From Thalia democratica (lineage: Eukaryota), in contig OZ241826.1 in the NCBI GenBank assembly GCA_965202585.1, forward strand, positions 103,974,001 to 104,038,000: DNA of 64,000 nucleotides. Reading direction: 5' to 3'. Each line of letters opens with the position of its first letter. Position 1 is the stretch's first letter. Both the position numbers and the translations under genes were made by a program. Positions 40,929 through 64,000 of the stretch are shown here, piece after piece. The notes under the pieces are model-generated. The model was not told the DNA's origin, made no database searches, and worked only from the letters and a program-made list of their open reading frames with translations.

Positions 40929-43900
40929 TCAGTTGTCATGGGAGTCCTTGGATCCCACTCCAGCTGTCATGGCAACTGCGTGCCTCTTTATTGTGTCATC
41001 AAAGCATTTTTGCAAGTCTGATGACATCCCTCTCTGGTAGTGCGACAACTGGAAAAATTTAATGTTTCAAAATTTGGAAATCAAATATTTATGAAGTTTT
41101 AAAAACAACTAGTTTGTTTGTTTGGCTTGTTACTAATTAGTGTGAAAGATTTTAAACAGTATAAGTGCGAAAATATAAATCTAAAAACTAATGGTGAGAT
41201 TTTGCTAAAAATTAATTATACTCACCTCACTACCGAAGGATGGGTTCTTGTATGACGTCATCTTGGTGACGCTGACGTCATAATTTGTCGGTTTCGTGAC
41301 GCACTCTGTGTTCATGTCACAGGTGCATGACGTAATTTGACGGTAGTTGATCGTTTGCTGTAAATTATTATATTTATTTTGTGATAAAATCTAAATCTTT
41401 AGAGGTTCATCTTTAAAGACTTATTAAAAGCTAATAAATATGTTAGTTGTTAAATTATTTTTACAAAGCATACAAGACAAATAAAGCTTTTAACTAAAAA
41501 ACTAAACATTTCATCAAGTTTAAATGTTATTTAGATATAACATTTTTAATTATATAATTATATATTATATATAAACTACATAACAATTCCCACTCACAAC
41601 AGTATCGTCAAGGCAGTCGGTGGTCACGGTGACATTGTCGTAAGTGGACGGTGTGCAGCAGGTACAGGTGTGCACCATTTGCAGGAAGGAGGCACCGGAC
41701 GAGCACAAACCGCTGCACCACGTCACAACTATCGGTTGCCTGGCAACGCAGCCGTTTTCGAACTGGTACTGGTCGACCGTGGTTGATGACAGGTCACATG
41801 GTCGCTCGGTGAAGGAGCCTGATAAGGTGTTTTTTATTTTTTAGTTTATTATTTTCACGGTCTACTGTAGTTATTGAAAACTTACTAATCATTAATTCAA
41901 AAGCTTTTTTTTTCTTTTTTGATAAAAATAAAAAAAATTAATCTTAGATTTTTTAAAGTACTTAAAATTAAAAACTCTATCAAGTATATTTGTAAAAAAT
42001 CGGTTTAAAAAAAAACTTTAAATGCTTAATTTTTATCACTAATTATATTTGAAATGAAATTTGTCTAAATAAAATACAACCACTTACATTCTTGGCAACA
42101 TTTATCTTTATCATAGACAACTTCTCCCTGTAAAATAAAAATAGAAACTTAGTACTTTAAAGCTTTGCGTATACTAAAAAATATTGTCAGCATTCTTTTT
42201 TAGTGTATGTTTACATATAACTTTTAATTTATTCAAAAGCAAGAAAAATTTATCTGTTTTTATTTTTATTCAAATAGCTTTTGAAATCTAAAACTTTAAG
42301 TAATTTCCAAAAGTTGCTTTAAAGTGCTACTTACTCCCATTTTGAGGCAGTTTTCAGCATCAAATACAGGACAGTTTACTCTTTCTTCCAATAAAAGAAC
42401 AAAGCCATCACCATCATCTACACATTTGTAAACTTCACATCTGTCTCTGGTTGTATCTCCCATCTAAGTTATAAGAGTTATAAAAATAACACATAGTTAA
42501 TAAAATTGTAAACATTACATTTATCTCTGATTGTATCGCCTTTCTAAATTATATTAGATTTTAAGTTTTGCTTAAAATAAAAGTTAAAAATATCTACTAC
42601 GTGGATATTGTTTTACTAAATACTTATAAACAAAAAAACAAGAAGGAATATTATAAATTTAACTACTTTTACAACAAACAATAAACCTCTAATAATGTTG
42701 GTGTGTTGTCAATAGAAATTGAACATCTTATTGGTTTACATCTTCCACAACAATCTCCTGCTACTTGTTCTCTCTCAAAGTCCTAAAATGCGAAAAAGTA
42801 TTGAGTTTTATAAGCTTAAAAGCTATTTTTATCTTAATATGAATATAAATGCAGGATTTGTAATTAAGTATACATAATACATGTAATGATATTTTTAGTT
42901 TTAAAATATTTTTAAGCTTTAAAAACAATAACAAAAGTAAGTAAAGTCATACTAATACCTACTGCTACACAAGTTATTACTATTTCTCAAATCAACTTAG
43001 TAAGCCAATAAACAGTATTGCTTTTATATTTAGTGGGAAGATTTGTTTTAAAAAAAAATTCTAAAATTACAAATCACAATTATTTGTTGAAAGTCCAAAC
43101 AATTGCCGAACAAACCATAGGACATGGGGTGCAAGTAATGTGTTGGCAGGTAGTCACATGGAAACCATCTTCACCCCTTGTTGTTAGAGAGCAGTTGCAA
43201 GACGTACAATCATCTGGTTGCCATACACTGCCCGGTTGTTTCTATAATAATTAGTTTGGTTACAAACTGTTTAGATATAGTAAGTACAAAGATTGTAATT
43301 TAAAATTTATTGAAGCTTAAATCAAGCTAATAACACATTAACTGCTTTGTAATTATTAATTAAAACTTATTTTATTTGGAAAAAAAGCTTTTAACTAGAA
43401 TAGTAACTTTTTAACTTTAACAAAGAAATATTTAACAAATTTCAAAGTACACTATGTAAAAACTCACAATAGTTTTGCTGTTATCAGCGTCTGTTATGCA
43501 AACTTCAGAAGGTTCTGTAAAAAAATGTATCGCTATCAATTTTTTTCAAAAAGATACTTGACAAGCTAGCTAATAGTGATATATTCATACAAATTGTCAT
43601 TGACGTTACGAAAATATTTGCTTCTATATTATTAGAAAGAACATGTCAATTTGATACTCTTAAATAGTTTGTTTTACTTGTTAACTAAACACATAACATT
43701 ATTTAAACAAACCACAAGTGCATTTATTACAGCATTGAGTTTAATCACAATATATTAATAAAAAATAAAAACTCTTAAATGAGTCTAAAACATCATTAGT
43801 TGAACATGTAAAACTAACTAATCAATTCATATAATGTAAACTTACCGCAAGTGCACTTATTGCAGCACTGCGTTTCGTCGCAGCTCAGCTCGTACCCGAA

Positions 43901-46900: not shown

Positions 46901-49900
46901 TGAAAGTACTGTTGTACTTAACTATTTATTAGCAACCAGTACTATATGATAATAGATTCAAACTCACCGCACTCGTACTGTGGACAACAAGCTGAAGACC
47001 CGACAGTCTGCTGCAAATACTGGCATGAGTCCTGGCACACTGGAGTCTCACTCTCAGGACATGTTTGTTCGGTGCATTTGATCTCAAGTGTTCTTCCGTC
47101 GCACGAACAAATCACACAGGGGTTTTCTTCATCCACCCAAGAAACTCCCGACTGTTAGAGTTTAATAGCTTTTAACATTTATAACAAAGTTTTCTATATG
47201 GTTCTGTTTTTATATATATATTTATTTCTCTACTTAACAATAATAGTTATGTTTTATACTTTAGTTCTTTTGAACAATTATCCCTTTCGATAATAGGTAA
47301 TTTTAAAAACTGTTTAAGAAAAACTTGTTATGAAATTATTTTTTAAAGTTGATAACAAATATCTATATTTTCCAAAAATAATTTATCTTACTTCTCTGTA
47401 TATTCCGGCTTCCTGATCAAAGCACATATCACACAGTTCTTCTTTCTGGCACTTTCCACTGATAACAACTTCTCCCTCAGGACAATCAATGAAGCACCCT
47501 TCAGCCTTCTCCATGCTAAAATCCTCCTCATACCTGTTTTCGCATGTTCTCTCATAAGGTTGCTTCCTGCATGGAGAATACACGTGGCCATCGGGACATG
47601 TCAGTTCTGTTTGGAAAAAAGTACTATTTCAATTTAGTTGAAAAATAGTATGTAAATGTTTTAATTTCATTCTATTAAAGCAAAGTTTTTGGTTTTTCAT
47701 TTTTTACACCTAGCAAGAAAAGTAGTTTTATACATAATCTATTTCAAAACAAACTATGTATAGATACAAGTTCAATTTAGAATAAAACTTAAAGTATATC
47801 TATATTTTACCAGTTTAATACATCAAATAAATACTAACCACACTGTTCAGTTCTCCAGTCAATACACTTTCCAGCGTGTTTGCAAGCTTCCGCAAAGCTG
47901 GCAAGTGAATCACAAGCAGTTCGTTTCTCCTTACAAGTATCTACTTTGCACGATTCATAGTATCTCTCTGTAATTATTTGGATTATCTTTTCAGTCACAA
48001 ACAGTTTTAAGTTTAGAAAATTCGTTTTTATTAGGCTTTTTTTTTGCTTTTTTTTTATATTTTCAAGTATATTAAAACTAGTTGAGGAAACTAAAATAAC
48101 AATTCAGAGAAAAATATTCTAGAAAATATGTACATTTTTCAAACTGTTTAGTTGTCTAAGAAAATCAAGTTCAAGTAACTTCGCTACAAACATAATTTCA
48201 TTACACCGTACAACTTGAAATGCCAATAAAAGTTTTACTACCATAACTTATAGCATCGCGACAATTTTTGAACTCTGGCTTGTTGATGATGTCATCACAC
48301 ATTACGTCATAGTTGTCGTTACAAACTGGCGGTTTCGGTTCCGGTTCCACGCAGTCGCCCTGATAATAAAAGTTTTTTTATAAAAGACTAAAACAGTTTA
48401 TGAGTATAAAGAACAATATAATAGAATATTTTCTTTTAGAAGATTGTTTCTCTAAATTCTTTAGTAATACCTTTAAAATATTTTAAAAAACATTATAGAA
48501 AAATTAAATGAGAAAAAAAAACTATTGTGACCCATAATTGTCGAATTACTAGGATATTAAACTTATATGTTTAAACAAATATACCTCTTCAACGAGCCAA
48601 TCGTGGCCCATTTTTGTCGGGTTCGGCGCCAAACTTCCGTCTTTCAGTTTCAGTTCATCAGCTTTTCTCCTATTGCAGTTACCTGCAAAGTAGAATCGAT
48701 TTTATTACAAGCATGTTTATATACATACTTGTTGCATTTGTTTTCTGTTTACGAAGACAGTTTTTAACTTAGATTTTTGAAGTACAAAAATGATACAAGA
48801 TGTAATTGCTTGTAGTTTGTTTGTAAGGCTTATTATTAAAATAAAAAATTGTAGAGAAATTTAAATTTGTCCCATTTTTATAACTCATACTTACCGCAAA
48901 GCCCCTCAACTCTGCTGTCCCACTGATAAGCGGGCAGGGTAGCAGTCACTAGGTGGTGCTCAGGAGTGAACTCGAGTTCCAACCCGATCATTTCGCTCTT
49001 CACTACTAAAGTGTACTCGCCAACCTCCGTTATCCTCATGTTCATTCCCTCGTCGTATGGTAGTTGCGCTACGTAATCGTTCACAGTGACCTATTTTTAT
49101 TTCATGATTAATCACTTTTTTAAAACAAGAAAAAATCCTTAAGTACAAAACTTTTAGAAACAAACTCCCAACTAGCTATTCAAAAATATTTTGTTATAAC
49201 TATATTTTCCCAGTTAAAAAAAACTTAGTCAAGAGATTTGGTGAATTCTAATATTCTATTATTATGTCATGTAAACATAAAAACTTCAAAAAACAAAGTC
49301 TAAACTAACGGTGAGATCGGGTGACAGCAGATACGTCATTTCTCCTCTTTCGATCTTAACTGACGTAATGCAGGCCACTGTTACGTCATCAGTGCAAGGA
49401 ACTGCCGAGTAGCTTACGGTGAACTGTGACGTAGGATCTTTTATCTTGTCTGATGACGTAATGAGGGTCCTGCTTCCGCATTCTTGGGTTGTGGGGGCTG
49501 GGATCGTGTAGTAAGATCCGTCGAATGTGTGGAACTGTGAATCTCCTCCCAAAGAACAATAACCTAGTAAAATAAGTTTTTTGAACAACGGTTTTTTTTT
49601 ACTTTTAGTTGTAAATGTTTATAGTAGTTTTTACAACACTATTAGCACAAGTCATGCATATATATACACTGTTTTTTGTTCTTATCTATTTTTTACGCAA
49701 ATCAAAAATGTCACAAATCAAGCTTTATTTTAGGTTGTGAAAGTTTTTAAAAATACATTAAATATTTTTAATTTTCTTTTGTCAATTTTTTTAATATTTA
49801 TTCAAAACTATCTTACATTGACATTCCCATTGACAGTTGCAGTCTTCATCCAGATACAACACAGGTTCGAATCCGTTATCACACATTGGTCGCTTTTGCT

Positions 49901-52900
49901 TCTCACAAGCGAGTCTCTTATTATGCAGCACAACCAACCCGTCATCGTGACATTTGTAGTACTTGCAAGAATCTCCTTCGTCTGGGTAGATCACTTCATC
50001 CAGCTCGAGTATCTGGTGTTAAAATAAATAAGAATAGCTGATATTTTTTAGTTTGTTATAAACAGTAATGATTTGAAGTAAAATGGACAAATATTGTTTA
50101 ACTACATTAAAAAAAAAATACAGATTTTAGAAAAGATAAATAATGTAAGAACTGTTGCATGAGATCAAACAAATATAAGTTTATTTAAAACTTCTTATTT
50201 TAATATTTACATGTAAGATTTTTTTTTTCTTTTTATTAATCAAGCCATACAAAATGAAGTTACCTGAGTAGATGCAGTTTCATCATCATAATGCAAGCAA
50301 ATGTTTTCAGAATGAGTTGTAGATTGTAGCTCCGTTGTTATTGCTTTAGTAGTTTCTGCTTTTGTTGTAGGCGCTTCTGTTGTTGTTGTCTTTTTAGTTG
50401 TAGGTTCAACTTTCTCTGTCGTTGTTGTCTTTTCAGTTGTAGGTTCAACTTTTTCTGTCGTTGTTGTTTTTTCGGTTGTAGGCTCAACTTTCTCTGTAGT
50501 TGTAGTCTTTTCTGTTGTAGTTGTCTTTTTAGTTGTAGGTTCAACTTTTTCTGTCGTTGTTGTCTTTTTAGTTGTAGGTTCAACTTTTTCTGTAGTTGTT
50601 GTCTTTTTAGTTGTAGGTTCAACTTTTTCTGTAGTTGTTGTCTTTTCAGTTGTAGGTTCAACTTTTTCTGTCGTTGTTGTCTTTTTAGTTGTAGGTTCAA
50701 CTTTTTCTGTAGTTGTTGTCTTTTTAGTTGTAGGTTCAACTTTCTTTGTTGTGGTTGCTTTTTCAGTTGTGGTAGTTTTGTCTGTTTTCTGTTTAGTAGT
50801 CGTTGTTTTTTGTGTTGTAGGTTTAACTCCTTCTGTAGTTGTCTCAACTTCTTTTTCAGTAGTTGTAGTAACCTTCTCTGTGGTTGGTTCAGACTTCACA
50901 GTTGTTGTTGTCAATTTAGCTTCTGTTGAAGTTGCTTTCGTTTCTGCTGGTATGAGTTTAGTAGTTGTTGAAACTTCTGTTGTTGGTTGAACGATTGCAG
51001 GCTCTATTGAAATTAAAAGTAAATAGGTAAATGGATTGAAAAACTGAATAATTTATATTCAAAATAACGAATTGGAACATTTATCTAGAGAATAATTGAT
51101 TATTGTTTATCAATTTCAAGTTTATTTAACACTTCTTTTTATGTTCTATGTACAATTTTGTAACAAACGTTGTTAATGTTCATTGTCATGATAATTAACT
51201 ATTAAAAAAGGGCTGTATTTTATTCTATCACTAAAAGTGTTCATTCATTTCTATCTAAACATTTTTAAAGGTTTTATTAGTGCGCAAAATACCTGACAAC
51301 ATCTTAAAAAAAATTTAAACGCTACCTTCGGTTTTGCAGTACAGTATTGACAAGTTGACAGCCGCGTTCTGAAGCTGCATGTTGTCAGGCATGATGACGC
51401 CCTCTTCACCCTCGGTGGACAACCTTTCGATCAGGTTTTCCCTGGCGGAGTTGACGCCGACGGCCGCTATTTTGAAGTCGTGATCCTCGTGGAGCTCCGT
51501 CACCAAGCTGTCGACCGAACCCGTGCTGTGAGTGTTCGCCAGCACCACTATCGCCTGTTAGGAGTGAATATATGTTTAATGGTTGAAACTTTTCTACAGT
51601 TAATAAAGTTTTTAGCTTTATCAGATACTGTATTTTAAACATGCTAAACTTAGTTGCTGAAACAAAATATATTTAACTAAGCCTTAGTAAAGTTTTACTG
51701 TTACTCAAATACGACATACTGTATTTACATAGAAAGCATCAGTTAGCTTATTTCTAGTTTATGGTAGTTTATTGATCTTTTATTATGCTTGTTAAAACTT
51801 TCAGTTACATTTTTTCTTGATATTTTATGTAACTAAAAGATTTGTTTTAACACTAAAAAATTTTTTGAAAACTCAACTTCTTCTTGAAACTTTTGAATAA
51901 GTAGTTCACTTTTACTTCACGACAAAAAGACCTATACCTTTTTAACTTTAATTTAATTCAAAGTTATATACCTTTTTAACGGGCCTTCCATCATCGGTTA
52001 TTGATCTCGTCTTCCTGACAATTTCATCTTTCACTTTCTTGAGAGCTTTCGAAACATCAGACGGCTTCGGAGGACTCGGTTTCAGTTTTGTGAGAACCTC
52101 AGCTATCTTAGTGATGTTTGTGCTCAGTTCTAGCTCGATCTAACATGTGATTGAATATTTTAATAGTGTTTATAACCTTTAGTTGTCTATGACTAGTTAC
52201 AAAATAAATCAGAAAACATACTATTCTATTACAATATATGTATACTTTATATAAGTTTAAGAAAAGGTTTTTAAACACGTTAATCTAAAATACTAACAGA
52301 AAATTAATTATATAAAAACCTTTAAAATATTTAATACATGTCTAGAAAATAAACTTAAACTTGCGACTCAAAAAGGCAAAAGTACATTTTGTAAGTAGAA
52401 TAACAACTACAAACTAACAGTAGCTCCTTCATTATCGTATGAGATGATGCTTCCTCTGGAGCAGTTGTTTCCGATGTAAATTCCTCGCAGGAACTTCAAA
52501 GCGAACGCTGCCATTTCCCTCAGTTCCTCCTCATTGTCGGTTGCTGTGTCGATGATCGTCACAAGGTCGTAAGCGTTGTCACAACAAGCGGCAGGGTCAT
52601 CTGTTAAATGTTAGAAACATAAATTTTAATATTTATAAAATTGAAGTATTCATTACTTAAAATATTTTAAAGATCGTATGCATTGTCACAACATGCGGCA
52701 GGATCATCTTTTTTATTTGATTGTTAGTTGTTTTATACAGTATTTTTTAACTAACCTTTAAAGCATTAAAAAAGCTACATTCTTTTAGATAGATTGTGTT
52801 AAACTTTTGTGTTTATCATATTTGTGTGTTTCATCTGTTATATTTGATAGTTGTTTTGTACACAGTATATTTTAACTGACCTTTTAAGCATTTAAAAATT

Positions 52901-55900
52901 GTTTCCTTCTTTTAAATAGCTTGTGTCAAACTTATGTGTTTATTAGCACGGTTATAATAAAATAGTAAGTTATGACTTTATTTTATACTGTATAGTTTAT
53001 ATGATACTTGTCCTTTAAAAAAATATTTTTCTTAATGAAGAATTTAAATGTTTTTCACTTAAATAAAACATTAAAGAGTTAAAGAGAGACCAAAAAAATG
53101 TTAAGCATGTTGACAACGATATGTTGAAACAATAACATTTTAGCCAAAATTATGGACTCACAGCTAGTATATAATAAACTCGAAAAATTTTATAAAAACA
53201 AAAGTTAAAACAACTACCCACCGGGATATATCAACGGAGGCACGTATTCGGGGAATGGGGGCTGCGTGGGTTGGCCGCAAGAGGCGCTGCAACACCGCAC
53301 CCTGGCGCTGTAGTCATGGCAATACAGTCCTTGTTGTATTGGTACATCCAAGTGGAAACACATGAGTGGAAAGAGCGGGTGGCAAATCACATTGTCTTGT
53401 ATCTCGCCTGCATCGCTCTGTTAAATAATTATTAAACATATCAGTTTAAAAAAAATAAATCAAATATTTTTCAGCATAGTTTACATAGTACATTTTTACA
53501 TAATTTTTGTATTAAAGAACTAATCTAGCAATCGACTAATTTAGAAGTTTAACTTAGTTGGATCTACTAGGTATAAAAAACGAATAGAACTATAAAATTT
53601 TCAAATTATGTGATTTTTTTTTACCTTGCACTCAATGTCAACACCCTGATATCCAATATCGCACATTCCATCATAGTCTATCGTACTGTCCGCCCAATTT
53701 TCAATGTCTCCAATATTTGATCTGGTTGGATGGTCATCGTTTCTGAATTCTGTAGATATGAATGTTTTAAAATATGCAAGTTTCAAACCAAATTAAAGGT
53801 TTACAATATTTTTTGTTTAAATATATAAATAAGTTTGAAATAAGTTGTTTTAAAATATGCAAGTTTTAACCAAAATAGATGTTGAGAAGTTTGTGCTCTA
53901 GAACTTTAAATGCTTTTGATTAAGAAACACAAAACTTGAAATAGATGAATTTAAACAATCATTAGAACTAATTAACATTTAGTTACGATAGTTTTTGTTC
54001 CTTAAAATAACAAAGTTAAGTTTTTGTTATATTTTATATCAATCTAAACTCTAGTTGAATTTACAATATAATTTTTTCAACCATTTAACAAAAAACGGAA
54101 TAAGTAAAACTACTAAGTTATCCTCATATCTTATTACCTGTCCAATAGCAAATACAGTCTTCCTCGGTGTAAGAAGGAGTAACAATTGTTGTTGTTGCTT
54201 TGTATTTCCTGGTTGTTTGTTGGGCTTTCTTTGTTGTTGTACTAACATCCTCGTCTGTTGGTAGAAACAGTATAAATAAAGTTTTATTTTGTTAGCACTT
54301 GAATGACTGAACTTAATTTAAAATTTCAAGAAAATTTTATTCAATACTGATACAGCTAGCTTTCACAATAAGTTAATGTAGTTTAACAACGTATTAACAA
54401 AACTATTTATCACTAGCTCTAACACTCTGTAGCTTTACTTAGTAAACTCTGTATACTTAGTTTCGAAATAAATTTTTTAAACGGTGTTTTTTAATTTTAC
54501 ATTATAGAACTCCTAACCTGGCCTCCACTTATCAACAATATCGTCGGTGACGTTCTTGTTATTCAGCTGCTCGTAGTTTTTCACAATCGTACAGTTTTCA
54601 GTTATTTTCTCCATGGAAGCAACGTCTGCAGCCTTGATGCCTATGCATGCTGTCTTGACTCCGCAAATGTGGTGCGATCTCACGAGGTCAAGTTCCTCTA
54701 CAGCCAGTGATAAGTCGTCCTGTTAACAATTATTTAATTTGTAAACAGATTTGTTTTGAAAACATATCAATAATAAATCTATTTTTGGCTTTTGAAATAA
54801 AAATTTTCTAAAGCTTATAATTATAAATTTAATTTTATCAACTAATATACGTCATAGTTCAACTTATACAGCTCTAGCTTTGAAAATGCAATAAAAAATC
54901 AGAAAATTGTATGTGTATAAATATAAATACTGCCATTAAACAACCTTAGGACGAGCATCAGAAACGAGATAGAAGTTCCACTTAGACTGGGGCCTACCGT
55001 ACTTCCTCATCATTTTGACCGCGTGCACCAGAGACTTTGATGTTTTCAGAACTTGCGCGGGAACCGGACTCAGATTCCTGATTTCTTCAATAAGCTCGTC
55101 CAGTTCTGAAATGTCGAAAACTTCTGATTCGGTGAGAGGGTTAGAACCGAACGGAATGATTGATACCTGTTCATAACAATAGTTTTTTGATAATAAGAAA
55201 CATTTAACTTGCAAAATCATAACTAAAATTTTCTCAGTTATTTCAGAACATAATAATAATTTAGTTTTTTTTGTTTTCAAACACAAAACTTTTATAATTT
55301 TATTTGTCTGTCAAAGTATAAAACTTTTATTTATCATTAAAGATAGCAGTTAAAGGTCTCAAGGTATTAATATAGAAAGAAGTCTAACTTCCAATACTTT
55401 AGGACTTTGTTTTAAAACGGTTTTTTATAAAGCAAAAAAACAGTTAAAAATAAAACCTCATTCAAATAGAATTAAGTTAAGTTTCACTTTGTTTAAGTAT
55501 ACTAAATCGTACAACTTTTATCATAAACAAACTTTATTTCCGTCACCGGCCAGATTAGTCCTCCTGACAACTTCGACCAAGGCCAGTTTGAGTTGGTCCA
55601 AATTTTTATCGCTGATACCAGCAACGTCCACTATCACCATGGAATCCGAAATACGCGGGTCGCAGGTTGGTTGTTGGGGCAATGTCGTCTCGAGTTTTGG
55701 TGACGTCATCACTTTAACAGTTGTCGTCACAATCGGTTTTATTGTGCTGGTTGTTGTGACAACTGGTGTGGTCTTCTCAGATGTTGTTGTGGTCTTTGGT
55801 TTCGTTTCGGGTTCAGGTTTAGGAGTTGTCGTGGCAACAAACTTTGTTGTGGATGTCGTCTTAGCAACGGAACTTGTTTTCGGTTCTGTTTCAGGTTCAG

Positions 55901-58900
55901 GTGTCGAAGTTGTTGTTTGAATAACTTCTGGTGTTGTGGACACTGAAAATATACATTTACTTAACAAAGTAATAAAAGAAACTTCTATAAATGATATACT
56001 GTGTTATCAAATTTTAGAACTTTTTATACACCTAAAGCCTTTAAAGACTATAATTGCTTTAACTCAGCTAATTCAAAAATTTATAATTTTAAATTTAAAA
56101 ATAAGTAATCATTTTAACCTGATTTAAGTACATTTAAGTTGAATTTTTTTATATAAAAAATTTTACACAAAACTCACGCTGTCTCGTAGTAGTCGGAGTG
56201 ACTGCTAATTCACACAACTTCCTCGTAACGTCATCCGCCGACTGTGACGTAATTTCGGTGACGTGGAATGCCGGGATGTTGTTGTAAGCCAGGTTAGTTA
56301 TGACGTCATTTATAGCTTGGTCGTTGTCGCTTGGTGTCTCCTGGTGTATGAGGAGAATCGCCTTCGGTATTTGCTTGCGAGTCTTCGATGTTAACAGGAG
56401 GACGTCTGTAGCATTTTGATTACATTTATTAAATTTGTATTATTTTAATTATATTTTTTTGAAATGTTAGAAGAGCATACTTTGTTTTTAGTTATATTTA
56501 AATTAATCTTTTCAGTTTTTAGTTTTTAAACGTTTAAATTAAGGTAACACCAACATGAAGCATGGTTTGAACATAATAGAAATGTTTAAAGATGTTACGA
56601 ATTTTTGTATAAAACCTACAAACCTGATACAAAGTCTAAAGCAGGATGCAATAGGAACATTCCATCTTCGGAAGTGGTGAGAGTTGGTAGTTGATCCAAA
56701 TTTTTACGGGCTTCCACTGCTGTTGGACTGTCCATGAAATCCAACCACAAACGAGGGGTGGCGCTGTATGTTGTCAGGGAGAAACGCGTCTTACTTGCCT
56801 GTGAGTAGTTTAATTATTCAAGTAAAAAATAACGAACTATTTATATGTGGTACAAAGGTATCTAATGTTTAAAATTTCTCAACTATCAAAAAACATTTTA
56901 AACTAAAAAAAAGAATCATTCCAGAGTAGAGAATATTTATTTCTAGTTTAATATTTCATAAAGCGTTTTTCCTACAAATCAACCAACGTACCCCGATGTC
57001 CATTGATAGCACGACTTCCTTCAAATAAGCGACCACTTTCTCCTTCAGGTACATGTCACCTAGCAACCTGCTGTCCACCAGCACCGCAACGTCCATGGCA
57101 ACCGAGCACGTGACCTCGTCCACGTGTTTGAAGGGCGGCAGCTCGGTTGGGGGTAAAGTCGGTTGGGGTTCTGGGGACGGGGGGTAGCCCGCGTTCTGGC
57201 ACAAGTCGTTCCAGATGATTGAGGCGAACTGACGCGTGTAATATTGCAAGGATGCAACACTGTTTGTTTTTTTTTTTCGTTTTTTCACCGGATTTATATT
57301 TTTCAAAAATACTGAAACTTTAATTTTAATTGATGTATAACAATAGTTTTTTAAAGACATAACTTGCTTTATTTTGAATTAAACTTGTCTAAAATATTTC
57401 TTATTATTTTACAACATAATTCTAAAACAGGTTTTATTAGGAAGTCATTCGTACAAAAACTATTGAATACTTACTTTTTGTACTTAATTTTGTAGTCGAA
57501 GTTGGTGAGTTGGTCGTTACTCAAGGTGGCGCTGTTTTCCGTGACAACGCTGGTGAACAACACCTCGTTGTCATGCAAATTCCTTAGCGACGCCTTATTG
57601 AGTAACACTTTGCCCCTTCTGATCGTCACAAACGTCAGAAGTTTCTTCACATCTTTACCGCTTCTTCCAAACTTATCGAAAATCCTGATCGCTCTTTCGG
57701 CTCCGACTTTGTACGAGAGTCCCTTGGAAGCGGTTGAAAGTTTGAAATTATTAACTTGGGTCTTCAAAGCTTCCCTGTCTCCTTGGAAACCGCGGTACAG
57801 GTTTGACACTTTGCCCCCGAACTTGACAACCGCCACTCTCGTTTGATCGTCGCCGAATGAAACAAGAGAAGAGAATTTCTTTATAAACTTTTTGAGAGAG
57901 GCCAAATTGCGGGGTTTGTGGAAGAAAAGATCGTCAACCGCTAGTATTAATTCAACTTTGCAATCCATCCTGGGAGCTGGTACCGTGGGTTGTGGTACGA
58001 ATTTGGTGCTTTCCTCGTACGGCTCAGCAACGTCACAGAACAACTCTAATAACTCGTACTCCAACGTGAGAAGGTCGTAGAGTCTCGTAACAGGGATTTT
58101 CCCGTTCACATCAGTGGAAAGATACTTTCCTTTGGGGAATTTTATTCCGCCGATGAAAAACGTGAACACCTTGACGTTCATCTTTTGCGCGTACCTCATC
58201 GCGGACTCGAGATCGTCCATGCTGTTTCTGCCCACCATCAACAAAATGTACTGCAGAGACACTTTCTTATTAGCAAGATCGTTGATCGTGTTGTTGAGGG
58301 CCAACCCCGCGTTCGATGGGTTGAAGGTTATTCCCTGGTGTTGCATCTTATCGAGTATCTCTACAGTCTCTGCCATCCCTATGAAGTCTTTGGACTCGAC
58401 GTTGAACTCCATGTGCGAGTTTGCTCCGTAAGCGTACCCCATGAACCTGTTTGCTCTGGCGTAGATGCTTCCCGCTCCTATCAGCTTCATTACCTGTTAC
58501 AACCAAATACCAGGTTAAAATTTTGCTTCTTACAAGACTAATTAAGGTTTTGTAAATTAAATAGTTAGAGCAGAAGTGTTTTACAAGTTGTTAGATTGAA
58601 AGTACAAGAATATTCTAAGTATAAGTTTTTTTTGTTATTATTGTATATCCATAAGCTTGCACTCCTATATAATTCAAACATATGCTTAATTTTATAGTAG
58701 TACAATAATTAATGTGTGAACATATATTACCTGCTTGATGAAATGAGTTACTTTTCTTCCGTCGCGGCTCGGACTAAACAATGACACGTCATAAAGGAAC
58801 GTGACGTCACCAGCAGGACATACAACCGACTTGGGTATTTCCACGGGCGGAGGTGGTTCGTACGGGGCGCACGAAATGCCTGCCAACGATACCACTGCGT

Positions 58901-61900
58901 CCTGCAGGAAGTTCTCCTTGGTAACGGGGATTTCCACGTAACCGTCGTCGAGGTTGTAGGACGGGAGAAAGTATTCCTGCTCGACCACCATCGAGATTAT
59001 TCGGATTCCCTTCTCGATGTATTCTCTCCTGACTGCTTCAATGCCTGATGAGTTACCGGCTCTGAGTGATATTAGGACTATGACTTTTCTGGAATCTGTA
59101 GATTCGGTGAAGAAATTAACAGTTTCTGATAGAACATCAGAGACTGGGAACAATTCGCTATTTCCATCATCCAGGTTGACTGTGTTGTACTGGCTACCGA
59201 GATTGATGTTCGCGTTTCCAACCAAAACGACAGGTCTCGTTGTTTTGAAACCAAACTTAACTGCTGCTTTCTTGAAAAAGTTCTTTGTGACGCTTCTAAA
59301 TTTACCCTTGTTGAATAGCGAGCTATCAACTGCAAAAGCCACCTCCATCTTTGCTTCACATATGCTCTCTGTTATTGGTCGTTTTGGAGCGCTGCAGACG
59401 TAATCGAGTATTCTGTTTGTTGATTTATATACTTTCTTTGGTAATGAGTCGCCTTCAAACTGTATGCTCTTCAACATTTTTCTTGAACTGGAAAGAAGCT
59501 GGTCGCTGTTTGGTGACACAATAACTGAAGTGTATTTGTTCAACTCAAAGTCGTCTAAAGCTTCAAAAGTTTCAGGGTTTTCATCAACCGGTCTGCCTGT
59601 CACCGCAACGAATACTTTAGAAGCGGAAGTCAGCCTTCTGGGGAACATTGGTTCTCTGTTCATAAACTCCAAAGTGGAGCCGAAATTAACATTTTCAGAT
59701 ATTTGTTGGATATTTTTCAAATCAACCTCCTTGGCTCTTCTCTTCTCCTCCCAAAGAACGTCCTCAAGGGCGAGATCGGGTGAGGATAAGTAAACTCTCG
59801 GTTCATCAACGTCGGAGTGGAAGACGATTACCAGCCTTACCTTTTTACCATCAACCTTGAGCGCTCTAGTCAGCTGCAATGTGAGATCAGCAACTGAGCT
59901 TGTGGATTTCAACACAAACGAGCTCCTGTCGATCAACAACACGATGTCAGATTCAACGTGACCCTCGCACTTCAATACAACAGATGGAGCGTGGATCGGC
60001 AGGTCGTCGCAAACAGTCCTGACTACCTTGTAACCGGCGTCAGGTAGCTCGCTCCTGCCCAAGACAGGTATGTACAACTCAGGGTTGGAAGAAAGGGTTC
60101 TGGCGGTGAAACCAGCGGATTTCTCGTCGTCCGCGAACACGGTGACGTGCACGTCGTTTTCGTACAACCGCTTGATGACGCCGTTGCTCACTTTTTGCAG
60201 TTTTCGTTGAGTTAGTAGCTGTTAAGAAAAAACATTTATTTTATATTAATAGGTGCAACTGCCACCTCATAAGTATGGCAAAATATAGTTATCAAAAAAA
60301 GTTTTTTTTTTATGAAAAATTCTAAAAATCTTGAAATCTTCATAAGCGACCAAAGATATAATTTCAAAATAGAAATTTTAACTTACAACAATGCCCTTCA
60401 CATTTGATGAGTCGTAGTTAAAGTTGTTTAATAAGCTATTCATTGATGTCTCAATATCAAGCTCATTAGTCATTTGCAATGCTGCAGTAGTGTAGTCGTT
60501 TACGTTGGAATTTAAATTGTCTACTAATTGATCTACATTATTTCCTGGTACTTGATCTAAGTTTCCGTCCAAAGTTATTCCGAATAACTTGAGCTGAAAA
60601 AAACAAAGTTTTTATAAAGTTTATTTGTTGTTTCTCTATATAAAAACTAAAGTTATAAAGTTTTCCGATAATACAAAGTTTAGAAAAACTTATATAGATA
60701 ATGTTTTAAAAAAATTTAAACTGTTGTTTTAGCAGAACACTAAAAATGTTTTAAAACTACAATTATGCAATAAAATAATAAACTAAGACGTGTTTACCTG
60801 AATAGCGGAACTAGATATTTCGAGACCTTGCAACGCATTCATCAAAAACAAGTTGATTGCTTCAGTTGTGACTTCAACAGGATTATAGTTATAAAAAGCT
60901 AAGTCAATTGCAATTAATAGTTGCGATGAAACATCACATAAAGGAATTGGTGTTGTTACTGGCAAAGTAAATTCAAGTAGCTCAGTTGTTGTTGTAATTT
61001 CAGGTTCAACAGTTACAGTTGTTGTTGTAACACCTGGTTCAACCTTCTCAGTTGTTGTAGTAACTCCTGGTTCGACCTTTTCAGTTGTAGTAGTAACGCC
61101 TGGTTCAACCTTTTCAGTGGTTGTAGTAACTTCTGGTATAACCTTTTCAGTTGTAGTAGTAACGCCTGGTTCAACCTTTTCAGTTGTTGTAGTAACTTCT
61201 GGTATAACCTTTTCAGTTGTTGTAGTAACTCCTGGTTCAACCTTTTCAGTTGTTGTGGTAACACCTGGTTCGACCTTTTCAGTTGTTGTGGTAACACCTG
61301 GTTCGACCTTTTCAGTTGTTGTGGTAACACCTGGTTCGACCTTTTCAGTTGTTGTAGTAACACCTGGTACAACCTTTTCAGTTGTTGTAGTAACTCCTGG
61401 TTCAACCTTTTCTGTTGTTGTAATAACTTCTGGTTCAACCTTTTCTGTTGTTGTAGTAACTTCTGGTATAACCTTTTCAGTTGTTGTGGTAACTCCTTGC
61501 ACAGTCTTTTCAGTCGTTGTTGTAACACCTGGTACAACCTTTTCAGTTGTTGTAGTTACACCTGGTTCAATCTTTTCAGTTGTTGTAGTAACACCTGGTT
61601 CGATCTTTTTAGTTGTTGTAGTAACACCTGGTTCAACCTTTTCAGTTGTTGTGGTAACTCCTGGTGTAGCTTCTGGCACAGTTTTTTCGGTTGTTGTAGT
61701 AACCCCTGGTTCAACCTTTTCAGTCGTTGTAGTTACACCTGGTTCAACCTTTTCAGTTGTTGTAGTTACTTCTGGTTCAACCTTTTCAGTTGTTGTAGTA
61801 ACTCCTGGTTCTACCTTTTCAGTTGTTGTAGTAACACCTGGTTCAACCTTTTCAGTTGTTGTGGTAACACCTGGTTCAACCTTTTCAGTTGTTGTGGTAA

Positions 61901-64000
61901 CACCTGGTTCGATCTTTTCGGTTGTTGTAGTAACACCTGGTTCAACCTTTTCAGTTGTTTTAGTAACTCCTGGTTCAACCTTTTCAGTTGTTGTAGTAAC
62001 ACCTGGTTCAACCTTTTCAGTTGTCGTAGTTACTTTAGGTCTTTCCGGTGAAGTCGTGGCTGTAAGTTAAACAACGCACTCTAATTAAGATTCAGATAGT
62101 TTTAATATAAGATATGGATAAGTTTTCAGAACCTCAAAAGCTAGCATAATCTTTTTAAGTGCAAGTAAATGTTTAGTACTTAAATTAATCAGTAGACGAA
62201 TTTGTCATTATACTTTACTGAAATACACAATAGTTGAGTAAGTTGTAGAAAAATTTAACTAAGTTTCTATCTTATTGTTTAAATGTTTTTATTTTAAGTT
62301 TGACTTCATACTTGATAAAAAATTTGCATTTAACACATACTAGTAACGTCAATGCTGCACAATTTTCTTCCAATTTCCTCCACGCTTTGTGACGTCATAG
62401 CACTCGGGTCTACGTCGATCACTAGAGTGTGCGGTTCTTCTGCCAACATTTCACGCTTCAATTGTAACTTTGTGACGTCATCGTCAGGCACATCGGTTGC
62501 CATGACAACCACGGCGAAGGTGCGGTACTTCCTCACACCCTCTCCGGAGTGGATGGTGTCGGTGACCAGGTCGAGGGCCGGTGAGAGGTAAACTTTACCG
62601 TAGGTCGTCGTGGGCGCTGTCATGGTGATGGACTCGATGAGATGCCGCGCCATTTTCGGTGTTTCTGATTGGCGAAGGCTCACCAGGGTTTTGGGGCCGG
62701 ATGAAAATTGAATGATCGAGAATCTTGTTCTGGTTGGCTGCAAGTTTATTAAATACTTTAATTAAATACATTTGTGCATCTAGATATTTTTGAATCTTAA
62801 AGAAACATTTTAAGTTCGTTTTTAAAAAGTAAGTTAAGTATAACAGACAAATAGTAAAATTTTTATAGATTTTAATTAGAAATATCTTAGATTTATAATC
62901 AAATTTATCTTTTAACTACATTATAAAAACTTTAAACTTAAAAATGTAGTTTCAAACATATAATCCAAAAAAAATTGTACTAACCTGTACATCCATCTTC
63001 TGAATTATTTCTCTTATCACGCTCTTCACAGTCGCAATCTTACTGGCTGATGACGTCTGTCTCCTGTCCAATAGGAACACGATATCCATGGGTTTCGAGC
63101 AGAACAGCTGGCTGGGTGGCAACTCAGTGACTGGTGTCTTCGGTTGCCTAGTAACCACATCGATTTCAGTGTTCTGGCAAACATCTTTCCACAAGATGGC
63201 AGCTACTTGTTTCGCCTTCACTATCAGGTTCTTTAGTCTGTATAGTATTAATTTATTATTAATATGAAATATTTCTATCTTTAGAAAATTTGATAATACC
63301 TATAAAATTTTATTTAATTATAGTAAAAGTTTTCAAATTAAGTTAATTTTCTTACGAGCAGTTTCACTCTCAGCAATGATCAAAAAAAATGTTTATTATA
63401 TTTAAAAACAAGTATTAATAACAATTTGTATAAAACAGCTTTAAAGATTTAAGAAGCACAAGTTTAGTTTAAATATATTTTAAACAATAATTTTGATTAG
63501 CTTATTGTAATTTTTATACAATTTTTTGTTTTTTGAAATTTACAAAACTGTTTGCCTTTATTGTTAGATAATACCTTAAAGTATGTTAGATATGCTAACA
63601 AAACCTTTAAACAACTGTGATAAAAAAATCTTTTAAGTGAAGATATTTTCAAATATGTTAAACCGAACAACAAAGTTATTTTTTACTTTTCATTGTAATC
63701 ATTTACAAACCTCTTAGCTTTGATGAATTTACCGATGTTGCTCAACCTTCTGTCACCTATAAAAAGCGCGTCGTCAGTGACAACCGATATTACTTCAACC
63801 CCATTCTTCAAAACTCCTTTCAACTTCTCAACCGACAACAACCTCTCCTTCTTCGGTTTCCTCCTTGCTACGAACATCACCACCTTAAGAACATCTTCCT
63901 CGTTTCTTCCGTTTTCTTCAAGGTAGTTTGTTGCAAAATCGAGGGTGTCTTTGTAGTTGACTGGTCCGCTTTGCGTTTTCGGTTTTATTTTGTTGACTAA
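40929..64000 (-). CDS. Giant vWF-like / gel-forming mucin, 5'-truncated by the window edge (42 exons, about 3,762 aa in window)
   Basis: Exons in transcription order: 64000-63687, 63237-62985, 62737-62341, 62059-60798, 60593-60387, 60218-58731, 58493-57475, 57259-56992, 56798-56624, 56405-56178, 55942-55533, 55166-54945, 54719-54518, 54254-54138, 53749-53625, 53417-53222, 52600-52419, 52139-51972, 51554-51326, 51003-50264, 50012-49817, 49563-49310, 49090-48895, 48682-48585, 48359-48242, 47967-47839, 47606-47392, 47151-46968, 46618-46498, 45513-45360, 45142-45088, 44737-44562, 44400-44302, 44026-43846, 43514-43468, 43241-43116, 42782-42687, 42463-42335, 42127-42088, 41818-41598, 41357-41226, 41048-40929 (TGA). 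All introns are GT-AG, phases match at every junction, and the sum is 11,289 nt (divisible by 3). Domains recognised from sequence motifs. Confidence 0.92.
41226..41818 (-). CDS. C-terminal cystine knot (CTCK) of the mucin
   Basis: PCDL...GCV...WCSGLCSS...CTCCTP...DCLD...ITSCTC, with the C-x-G-x-C, C-x-CC and terminal C-x-C motifs. Confidence 0.88.
42088..47151 (-). CDS. VWC-like Cys-rich modules of the mucin
   Basis: Repeated W-x(3-5)-C-x2-C-x-C...CC-x2-C patterns: WVDEENPCVICSC...CCPQYEC, WEDEVHPCYVLSC...CCPEC, WQPDDCTSCNC...CCGRC, and others. Confidence 0.8.
45604..46384. mobile_element. Tc1/mariner-pogo (Tigger-like) non-autonomous element in a mucin intron
   Basis: Perfect 13-bp TIR CAGTAACCTCTCG, TA TSD on both sides, subterminal gcgtaa repeats. 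Confidence 0.88.
47392..49563 (-). CDS. VWD-C8-TIL assembly (D4-like) of the mucin
   Basis: CYCSLGGDSQFHTFDGSYY and VEGLCGNCN (VWD); YYESCKVDTC...ACDSLASFAEACKHAGKCIDWR (C8); CPDGHVYSPC...TC...EGCFIDCPEG...C (TIL). Confidence 0.9.
50375..50743 (-). repeat. Coding 39-bp minisatellite, 9 copies of KVEPTT[K/E]KTTTTE plus one truncated unit (Thr-rich domain 3)
   Basis: Seen directly in ORF 50240-50914. Confidence 0.95.
51326..52600 (-). CDS. Tenth VWA domain, downstream of CysD
   Basis: CCDNAYDLVTIIDTATD...RGSIISY...AIVVLAN...FKIAAVGV...LYC across three exons. Confidence 0.8.
53222..54160 (-). CDS. CysD (Mucin2_WxxW-type) domain of the mucin
   Basis: Spliced translation CICYWTEFRNDDHPTRSNIGDIENW...IECK...VICH...MC...CHDYSARVRCC matches the C-WT-x-N-D-P / GD-E / C-DY-x-R-x-C pattern of gel-forming mucin CysD domains. 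Confidence 0.8.
54518..64000 (-). CDS. VWA (von Willebrand A) domain array of the mucin: 9 domains, the first partial, interrupted by two Thr-rich regions
   Basis: Repeated Cys-(x)n-hydrophobic beta strand-Asp domain starts: CSKPMDIVFLLD, CDVSSQLLIAID, CEGHVESDIVLLID, CEAKMEVAFAVD, CPAGDVTFLYD, CKVELILAVD, CSVAMDVAVLVD, CDPRISDSMVIVD. TRVAVVKF / TRFSIIQF beta strands and closing helix-Cys (RKLC, LFC, DVC) are also present. Confidence 0.85.
60972..62036 (-). repeat. Coding 33-bp minisatellite, about 32 copies of PGVTTTTEKVE (mucin Thr-rich domain 1)
   Basis: Visible 33-bp periodicity inside exon 62059-60798, with one VPEAT interruption. Confidence 0.95.

Follow-up and report, generated by a model that had tools for sequence, protein, structure and literature searches.

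What kind of protein joins a long series of VWA domains to Thr/Pro-rich repeats, a CysD domain and the C-terminal modules known from VWF and the gel-forming mucins? The question is raised by a stretch of 64,000 nucleotides from the salp Thalia democratica (assembly GCA_965202585.1, contig OZ241826.1, positions 103,974,001 to 104,038,000), below called the window. Within it a preliminary description, made from the letters alone, had recognized a giant hybrid of VWF and mucin at 40929-64000. All the elements listed in that description are present on the minus strand, and in the order given there. The gene is a variant within the VWF/gel-forming-mucin superfamily, being neither VWF proper nor a conventional mucin. 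Quite probably it is a single expressed tunicate gene for a secreted protein of approximately 14,500 residues, in which a VWF/mucin scaffold frames a block-copolymer core of VWA units and Thr/Pro-rich (PT) tracts, and which would form a sticky, cross-linkable filament or gel.

The minus strand from 64000 to 40929 represents the 3' quarter of this gene. For the gene model, 135 kb upstream of the window were included (positions marked "ext" continue the window numbering past 64000), and a Viterbi exon chainer was used that combines codon log-odds, GT/AG position weights and phase bookkeeping and was retrained on its own output. The result, 128 GT-AG exons joined in frame and uninterrupted by stop codons, spans 85,727 bp with a median intron of 273 nt; its coding sequence of about 43.5 kb specifies 14,488 amino acids, 353 of them Cys. 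The chain is terminated by the stop codon at 40929, the same coordinate at which the interval of the preliminary description starts, and an AATAAA-type signal lies at about 40656. Between 40 and 64 kb of the window long open reading frames (ORFs) occur on the minus strand only, the window sequence is free of N, and the GC content is 0.454 in the exons versus 0.228 in the introns. The last 3,753 codons (ca. 26% of the protein) fall within the window. The expectation that the gene runs on beyond 64000 was thus correct, since the exon-chaining model places 74% of the protein upstream.

The N-terminal part of the model consists of a signal-like start, six EGF modules and a D1-D2-D'-D3 region. The candidate first exon at ext 126655 (ATG…MKSFNFFVLTVILT|gttagt) joins the first EGF exon in frame and probably encodes a signal peptide; the first seven exons of the initial chain were discarded as implausible, and this exon was used in their place. 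The D assemblies lie at ext 121745-109746, where Pfam recognizes three VWD starts (E 6e-9, 1e-7, and 4e-9). Three TIL domains (E 1e-13, 5e-14, and 7e-4) and two C8 domains (E 8e-19 and 1e-14) were also found upstream by Pfam. When compared with the PDB, the upstream exons match the D assemblies of VWF, MUC2, MUC5AC, and MUC5B, with E values of 1e-17 to 1e-20 per domain, and also strongly those of FCGBP. The upstream extension proposed in the preliminary description therefore yielded D1-D2-D'-D3, together with a start that resembles a signal peptide. A furin-type RX[KR]R site is absent from the first 1,450 residues of the model, and none follows D2. The EGF-like modules, at ext 124841-122283 before D1, comprise one exon and six Cys each, the last one being perhaps truncated in the model. 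Such an N-terminal addition is not known from VWF or from the vertebrate gel-forming mucins.

Downstream of D3, single VWA units and PT tracts are mixed, with five super-modules interleaved among them, and all the VWA units sit between the third and the last VWD assembly. Each super-module is composed of a PT tract and six VWA units, a to f, with units b-e located in a single exon of ca. 2.5 kb, and the five together account for 30 of the approximately 41 VWA units. Of the chain, about 44% consists of VWA units and about 20% of PT tracts. The C-terminal part follows in the order PT, VWA, CysD, VWA, PT, Cys module, VWD, C8, a TIL-like exon, about five VWC-like modules, CTCK, and a tail of ca. 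65 residues. The VWA count comes from an iterative in-gene hidden Markov model (HMM) seeded only with one Pfam-verified unit; it recovers 41 units in the gene, nearly all with full-length coverage, and those numbered 32-41 (one partial and nine complete VWA-like units) belong to the window. The earlier figure of at least ten VWA domains holds for the window, with one of the ten being partial, and greatly underestimates the size of the array in the gene as a whole.

The support for the VWA assignment differs among the unit types. Types d, e, and f exceed the Pfam VWA (PF00092) cut-offs, types a, b, and c taken alone fall below them, and all four uninterrupted giant exons are above the cut-off, with three to four matched stretches each. 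Single-exon Pfam scans at default stringency missed most of the VWA units and all the multi-exon Cys domains; the 509-codon ORF at 58695-60221, the coding part of which is the 496-codon exon 58731-60218, gave no match in them. Relaxed thresholds, paralog profiles, and predicted folds were applied to the units silent in Pfam. At relaxed stringency a VWA match appears for the window copy of unit b, covering positions 1-136 of the 174 in the profile (E 0.008). Aligned from end to end, the five giant exons are 32-36% identical and keep the same Cys positions, and a Cys pair bounds the VWA units. The adhesion motif MIDAS (metal ion-dependent adhesion site, DxSxS) is kept in 2 of the 41 units, numbers 3 and 13, and in none of those in the window. 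Many bona fide VWA domains lack a MIDAS.

AlphaFold2 models built from paralog and ortholog alignments reached a mean pLDDT (predicted local distance difference test) of 73, with 80-94 in the domain cores, and they show VWA folds for units b, c, and d. The modelled unit d is closest to the N2 domain of collagen VI alpha3 (6snk; Z 20.4, root-mean-square deviation 2.7 Å, 179/188 residues) and also matches the A3 domain of VWF (1atz, Z 19.4). Unit b, modelled from the window exon, matches VWF A1 (1oak; Z 15.6, 3.0 Å, 176/196), and unit c the VWA-like domain of TFIIH p44 (6ro4_D, Z 13.9). The tandem-VWA structures of PTMP1 and of the collagen VI C-terminal region cover b and c together; further fold matches of the VWA units include collagen VI N5 and collagen VII, and the ESM Atlas look-alikes of the window exon are VWA clusters only. 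Small profiles made from a single unit type recover external VWA domains in the case of f and e, type f matching those of collagen VI with E 1.9e-11 at Z=1e6; those of types b and d do so marginally, and those built on copies of type a or type c alone recover none. Type c, with no Pfam match, is thus assigned by its fold and by in-gene links. Type a, split over three exons, is assigned by in-gene links only (hhalign to type f: 62% probability, 117 columns). After the Pfam scans, the row of five consecutive VWA domains looked like the weakest claim of the preliminary description; it is sustained by the folds of b and c, by Pfam for d and e, and by the in-gene HMM, type a entering through the links just mentioned.

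Searched against 1.84 billion representative sequences, the giant-exon profile retrieved 261 proteins. Apart from ORFs of sibling species, which come first, the named relatives comprise an amphioxus protein of 6,024 residues and arrays of the collagen VI alpha3/alpha6 type from sharks, lamprey, gar, birds, and a scallop; for the collagen VI alpha3-like arrays the E values go down to 1e-138. The named relatives show up to 21 matched stretches per protein.

The PT-rich residues number approximately 2,850 and form about eleven Thr/Pro tandem-repeat tracts with 198 TTTEK motifs. The main repeat is the 11-mer TTTEKVEPGVT, present in a window exon as 31 copies of 33 nt according to Tandem Repeats Finder (TRF); the last tract is built of a 13-mer with a 39-nt period. 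Two repetitive or low-complexity sequences of other kinds occur in the core. The exon at ext 84382-84097, between two VWA units, carries a stretch rich in Gly, Ser, Asn, and Tyr (GDDTDYNGMFNSTSYYGGPGNGSLSNGSVSNEYGGVFGDYSYGGNGSS), unlike the PT tracts. At ext 78773-79326, 14.8-15.3 kb past the window end, FISTGSCVQYNDQVNVYFIYNF is repeated in a tandem array with open frames in several phases; it was modelled as intronic, within the 1.4-kb intron of super-module 2 that separates the PT/unit-a exon from the next exon.

The single CysD reads C-x-C-x-W-T-F-R…GD-x-E…IEC…C-x-DY-x-x-RV-x-CC, with WTFR in place of WxxW. One of its three exons matches positions 50-88 of the 88 positions of Pfam Mucin2_WxxW (PF13330) with a sub-threshold E of 0.013, and the sole PDB match is a 100-residue chain of Mucin-5B (8oer, E 0.86), ending ...C.DY..RV.CC. 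Judged from these alignments, the CysD match is sub-threshold but specific. The VWD and C8 domains of the window exceed the Pfam cut-offs, with no PDB sequence match for the VWD exon 49310-49561, and the TIL-like exon after C8 has no match in Pfam or the PDB. VWC (E 4.6e-4) and Cys_knot (E 0.0017) are both below the Pfam cut-offs because introns split the domains; the best PDB match of the cystine-knot exon is the CTCK of VWF (4nt5, E 0.02). In the whole model there is no transmembrane-like segment, no RGD, and no run of five or more G-x-x triplets. Together with the 353 Cys and the signal-like first exon, the lack of a transmembrane segment points to secretion. A membrane mucin was ruled out for want of a transmembrane segment, and a collagen for want of Gly-X-Y.

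Whether the VWA and VWD parts belong to one transcript was addressed with two RNA runs of one marine metatranscriptome sample, which, like a DNA run, were compared over positions 47800-53500 of the window. The RNA contigs overlap modelled exons only, and their depth is zero in all six bins that are wholly intronic; the DNA run covers 30/30 bins. The RNA joints, CT..AC on the forward strand and hence GT..AG on the minus strand, coincide exactly with six modelled introns: 52600|53222 from CysD to VWA, 51554|51972 and 51003|51326 from VWA to VWA to PT, 49563|49817 from the Cys module to VWD, and 48682|48895 and 48359|48585 from VWD to VWD to C8. One contig of 537 nt bridges exons 110-111-112. The PT/Cys-module junction, 50264|50012, is visible only as loose ends of 13-14 nt that read the edge of the partner exon. 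Since the six joints run from CysD to C8, the VWA and VWD halves lie on one mRNA, which contradicts, for this part of the gene, the alternative named in the preliminary description that they are separate transcripts. The 34 differences listed between RNA and genome are all in exons, 26 of them synonymous and eight replacement; in the exons of folded domains the numbers are 21 and three. The gene is expressed and under purifying selection, and one spliced, constrained mRNA extends at least from CysD to C8.

Beyond this interval the unity of the gene depends on the model, and it can be asked whether the locus is divided among at least two neighbouring genes of one orientation, or among transcript units that exclude each other, the 14,488-residue chain being an artefact of chaining. 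A gene for D1-D3 and VWA might, for instance, precede a distinct one for VWA-PT-D4-CK. Wherever an in-frame path exists, an exon chainer will return one; the RNA was examined in the 47800-53500 interval only; and those database proteins that are almost identical to the giant exons derive from genomic ORFs of a single exon rather than from transcripts. Against this, every giant exon has a consensus acceptor and donor in compatible phase, and the core contains no start-like or terminal exon, no cystine knot, and no D-assembly. The family moreover requires that a single chain carry both ends, spliced RNA spans the passage from VWA to VWD, and the same alternation of VWA and PT recurs on one strand of an independent contig. 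A division into several genes is accordingly given a low probability.

It is far less probable still, to the point of being negligible, that the super-modules result from faulty assembly or represent a pseudogene array in decay. Long exons in tandem and PT repeats are classic sites of mis-assembly, but the copies, at only 32-36% identity, are not collapsed or duplicated reads; all of them are open, with their Cys positions conserved. Furthermore, the DNA run covers every bin of the interval, the changes are mostly synonymous, and orthologs exist at 72-89% identity.

These orthologs are ORFs on marine contigs of a sibling species, 72-89% identical to the individual super-modules 1, 3, 4, and 5, which indicates that the super-module duplications predate the split from that species. 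Within the 802-Mb genome assembly the giant-exon module is confined to this locus. A 27-kb ENA contig from a more distant organism (GC 0.42, ca. 24% identity) has an equivalent layout on one strand, in the order of a unit start, a giant exon with four VWA units, a two-exon unit, and a Thr/Pro tandem-repeat ORF. Just downstream of the latter, at 20401-21003 of that contig, lies an ORF for a hAT-type transposase (Dimer_Tnp_hAT). Another observation concerns the intron 58494-58730 inside VWA unit d, which is found in super-module 5 only and not in the four upstream copies. Two separate sibling-species ORFs break at this intron, and its gain (or its loss in the other copies) therefore predates the split.

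The host of the gene can be recognized as a tunicate from its mitochondrial code. In COX1 on contig C1833 (6815-11131) the standard code puts Arg at universally conserved Gly positions, and the canonical GGFGN, HLAG, and GGGDP appear only if AGA/AGG is read as Gly (translation table 13, the ascidian/tunicate mitochondrial code); 34 AGA/AGG codons must be read in this way, and five in-frame TGA codons are present. The reading of AGR as Gly identifies a tunicate genome. COX1-like stretches with many TAA, TAG, and TGA codons also occur on nuclear contigs (C4:56.84-56.95 Mb and C757:31294-32138); these are likely to be mitochondrial DNA copied into the nucleus, and the intact COX1 is that on C1833.

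The features of the window are collected in Table 1. Outside the gene, the next sizeable minus-strand ORFs upstream, at ext 171307-172628, approximately 45 kb past the candidate start, specify a peptidase C2 domain of the calpain type, for which a single database relative was found, 42% identical and from an ENA contig.

Table 1. Features of the window belonging to the VWF/mucin-like gene, listed from the upstream end of the window to the stop codon (HMM, in-gene hidden Markov model; AF2, AlphaFold2).
Feature	Position	Strand	Evidence
3' end of the giant exon of super-module 4 (to ext 66223), C-terminal part of VWA e4 (unit 32)	63711..64000	-	ORF continuity; whole-exon Pfam VWA E 1.9e-18, 3 stretches; AF2
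End of e4 and VWA f4 (unit 33); exons 63237-62985, 62737-62341	62341..63237	-	Pfam VWA E 3.3e-7; HMM E 1.8e-34
PT exon, ~31 x TTTEKVEPGVT (33-nt period); first strand of unit a5 from about 60990	60798..62059	-	TRF; model; donor cag|gtaaac at 60798
Middle exon of VWA-like a5 (unit 34)	60387..60593	-	HMM full-length, E 8.7e-25; weakest unit type
496-codon exon: a5 tail, complete b5 and c5 (units 35, 36), first ~45 residues of d5	58731..60218	-	AF2, folds, Pfam b5 E 0.008
339-codon exon: rest of VWA d5, most of e5 (units 37, 38)	57475..58493	-	Pfam VWA E 6.7e-11, 2 stretches
End of e5 and VWA f5 (unit 39); exons 57259-56992, 56798-56624, 56405-56178	56178..57259	-	HMM E 2.3e-37
PT tract of ~100 residues, then VWA unit 40; exons 55942-55533, 55166-54945, 54719-54518	54518..55942	-	HMM E 3.6e-27; linker PTS (Pro/Thr/Ser) fraction 0.54
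CysD-like, 10 Cys; exons 54254-54138, 53749-53625, 53417-53222	53222..54254	-	Pfam Mucin2_WxxW E 0.013; PDB 8oer; RNA joint
VWA unit 41, the last; exons 52600-52419, 52139-51972, 51554-51326	51326..52600	-	HMM E 1.4e-24; weak Pfam VWA E 0.0068; RNA joints
PT exon, 246 codons, 13-residue repeat (39-nt period), type TTTEKVEPTTKKT	50264..51003	-	TRF; RNA coverage and joint to preceding VWA exon
Cys-rich module, 7 Cys, between PT and VWD	49817..50012	-	No Pfam match; RNA joint 49563|49817
VWD; exons 49563-49310, 49090-48895, 48682-48585	48585..49563	-	Pfam E 4e-7 (1-77) and 1.3e-5 (77-142), above cut-off; RNA joints
C8; exons 48359-48248, 47967-47839	47839..48359	-	Pfam C8 E 5.6e-10; RNA coverage
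TIL-like exon, 8 Cys, at the D4 TIL position	47392..47606	-	Position and Cys pattern only
Twelve small Cys-rich exons, ~5 VWC-like modules, mostly two exons each	42088..47151	-	Pfam VWC E 4.6e-4 (exon 43241-43116); recurring C..C.C...CCP.C
C-terminal cystine knot; exons 41818-41598, 41357-41226	41226..41818	-	Pfam Cys_knot E 0.0017; PDB 4nt5 E 0.02, Cys aligned
Last coding exon: ~40 residues of tail and stop	40929..41048	-	Model

The domain order suggests how such a protein could act. By analogy with VWF and MUC2, the cystine knot would link the chains tail to tail into dimers, and disulfides in D3 would link these head to head into multimers. The PT tracts may be densely O-glycosylated and serve as stiff hydrated spacers, and the VWA blocks could be metal-independent nodes of protein binding or self-association, comparable to the N-domains of collagen VI, VWF A1/A3, collagen VII, and PTMP1. 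Such chains would make very long filaments, with glycan spacers between the blocks of six sticky modules, as would suit a cross-linked net or gel holding particles. In the preliminary description a glycoprotein had been proposed that is secreted, polymerises, and carries an extensive series of adhesive-type domains, and D1-D2-D'-D3 upstream together with the C-terminal cystine knot speak, at the level of sequence, in favour of it. The most plausible, though putative, use is as an extracellular material, mucus or filter, made by a pelagic filter feeder. The gene is a candidate for the protein material of salp mucus or filter nets, which is relevant to the ocean particle flux.

The same protein could, however, have another role, either as a matrix polymer of the tunic or body wall, similar to collagen VI or matrilin, or as a wound plug of the haemolymph, a "proto-VWF". 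The VWA units are most similar in sequence to collagen VI alpha3-type arrays, their folds match VWF A1/A3, collagen VI N2/N5, collagen VII, and the byssal PTMP1, VWA residues outnumber PT residues more than twofold, and an ascidian proto-VWF has been mentioned by Hynes in 2012 (PMC3308698). On the other hand, some 2,850 Thr/Pro repeat residues and a CysD are hallmarks of gel-forming mucins, not of matrix VWA proteins or VWF, and the protein has no collagen Gly-X-Y run, no RGD, and no furin-type RX[KR]R after D2. The coverage in the plankton metatranscriptome fits an abundantly secreted product, though it is compatible with either role. A matrix or wound-plug function is considered rather unlikely, and the mucus or filter material is preferred.

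Several points weigh against the reading of a single gene for a secreted, polymerising, adhesive protein. The RNA covers ca. 5.7 kb of the 86-kb locus, and the continuity from D3 through the five super-modules is that of the model, not of observation. The first exon and the signal peptide are likewise predicted only, the hydrophobic stretch being short. Unit type a is VWA-like only through in-gene profile links, and in the window neither TIL nor VWC reaches the threshold. Polymerisation, O-glycosylation, and binding by the VWA units are attributed to the protein from the behaviour of its family.

As regards novelty, PTS and VWA domains have been treated as alternative cores that separate mucins from VWF (PMC6109156, PMC4948705, PMC3308698), and VWF itself as a vertebrate or chordate innovation (PMC6109156, PMC3308698, PMC4948705). 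In the gene described here both cores are interleaved in an expressed gene of the sister group of vertebrates, with VWA in the position that it occupies in VWF, and the origin of the VWF A domains thereby becomes directly testable by phylogeny. Among 164 fetched relatives of the VWA units, VWD occurs in only one, an Octopus protein, and the whole order in none. The suggestion of a possibly undescribed architecture was borne out within the reach of the searches, the unpublished ascidian proto-VWF remaining a caveat; no described protein with this order was found, in searches that could not query the long proteins of Ciona, Oikopleura, or other salps. Nothing usable was found in the literature on von Willebrand factor-like endostyle proteins and on the proteomics of salp mucous nets. 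The gene is also a case of extreme modular growth, with an ancient duplication of a six-domain super-module and four or more domains per 2.5-kb exon.

Vertebrate VWF (D1-D2-D'-D3-A1-A2-A3-D4-C1..C6-CK) has the same scaffold, with VWA domains likewise between D3 and the D4-type assembly. The VWA units bounded by a Cys pair resemble A1 and A3 of VWF; VWF A1 is the best structural match of the modelled unit b, and A3 comes within 1 Z of the top match of unit d. The D2 TIL exon aligns with residues 651-719 of VWF, about half of them identical, with 65 bits for the best single stretch; the 129.6 bits of its total score to VWF add up four TIL domains and were given no weight in judging orthology. 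Unlike VWF, the salp protein has about 41 VWA units rather than three, approximately 2,850 PT residues, a CysD, and six EGF modules before D1; it is about five times longer, and in its model no RX[KR]R furin site follows D2. The affinity of the D assemblies is mixed, the D2 TIL exon being closest to VWF and the C8 exons scoring slightly higher with MUC2/MUC5AC, and the nearest sequences to the VWA units are collagen VI arrays. In view of this mixed affinity and of the PTS and CysD parts, the gene was not placed in VWF proper. That it is a tunicate ortholog or co-ortholog of vertebrate VWF which has retained the PTS/CysD core of a mucin is rather unlikely. If it were one, the VWA domains would have entered the mucin scaffold before the split of tunicates and vertebrates, and VWF would have arisen by loss of PTS and by paring down of the VWA array to A1-A3, not by a vertebrate-specific insertion of three VWA domains; the ancestral task of "VWF" would then have been that of an adhesive extracellular filament of a filter feeder rather than haemostasis.

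In comparison with MUC2, MUC5AC, and MUC5B ((VWD-C8-TIL)x3-PTS with CysD-(VWD-C8-TIL)-VWC-CK), all the defining blocks have counterparts in the same order, with PTS tracts and a CysD-like module in the core; the CysD, VWC, and cystine-knot matches are those given above as below the Pfam cut-offs. Unlike these mucins, the salp protein has only one CysD, without the second Trp of WxxW, N-terminal EGF repeats, and VWA units over about 44% of its length. Gel-forming mucins have no VWA domains (PMC4948705), and the presence of the latter means that the gene is not a conventional gel-forming mucin.

In sequence the VWA units are best matched by the collagen VI alpha3-type arrays, along with related multi-VWA proteins from amphioxus and scallop; in structure their top match is the alpha3 N2 domain. 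Human collagen VI alpha3 has 12 VWA domains. Long runs of mostly MIDAS-less VWA domains are common to both; unlike those arrays, which have no VWD, C8, TIL, or CK ends, the salp protein has no triple helix and carries PT repeats between its VWA blocks. The mussel byssus proximal thread matrix protein 1 (PTMP1, 4cn8), also from a marine invertebrate, has an adhesive or matrix role outside the cells, and the modelled VWA pairs b+c and d+e superpose on its two-domain structure over about 320 aligned residues. The likeness is one of fold only, PTMP1 being small, with two domains and neither polymerising ends nor PT repeats.

Among tunicates, VWD and VWA domains occur in the house proteins of Oikopleura, in separate oikosins (PMC3390340). 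The Ciona gut gel-forming mucin Ci-GFM1, of 2,880 amino acids, contains a chitin-binding domain and a PTS region of 50 residues, and in the paper describing it VWA domains are assigned to human VWF (PMC6109156). The ascidian "proto-VWF" mentioned by Hynes in 2012, with its domains arranged differently, is known from unpublished data only (PMC3308698). Together with these two ascidian proteins, the salp gene presents a tunicate D1-D2-D'D3...D4-VWC-CK scaffold that carries lineage-specific central modules.

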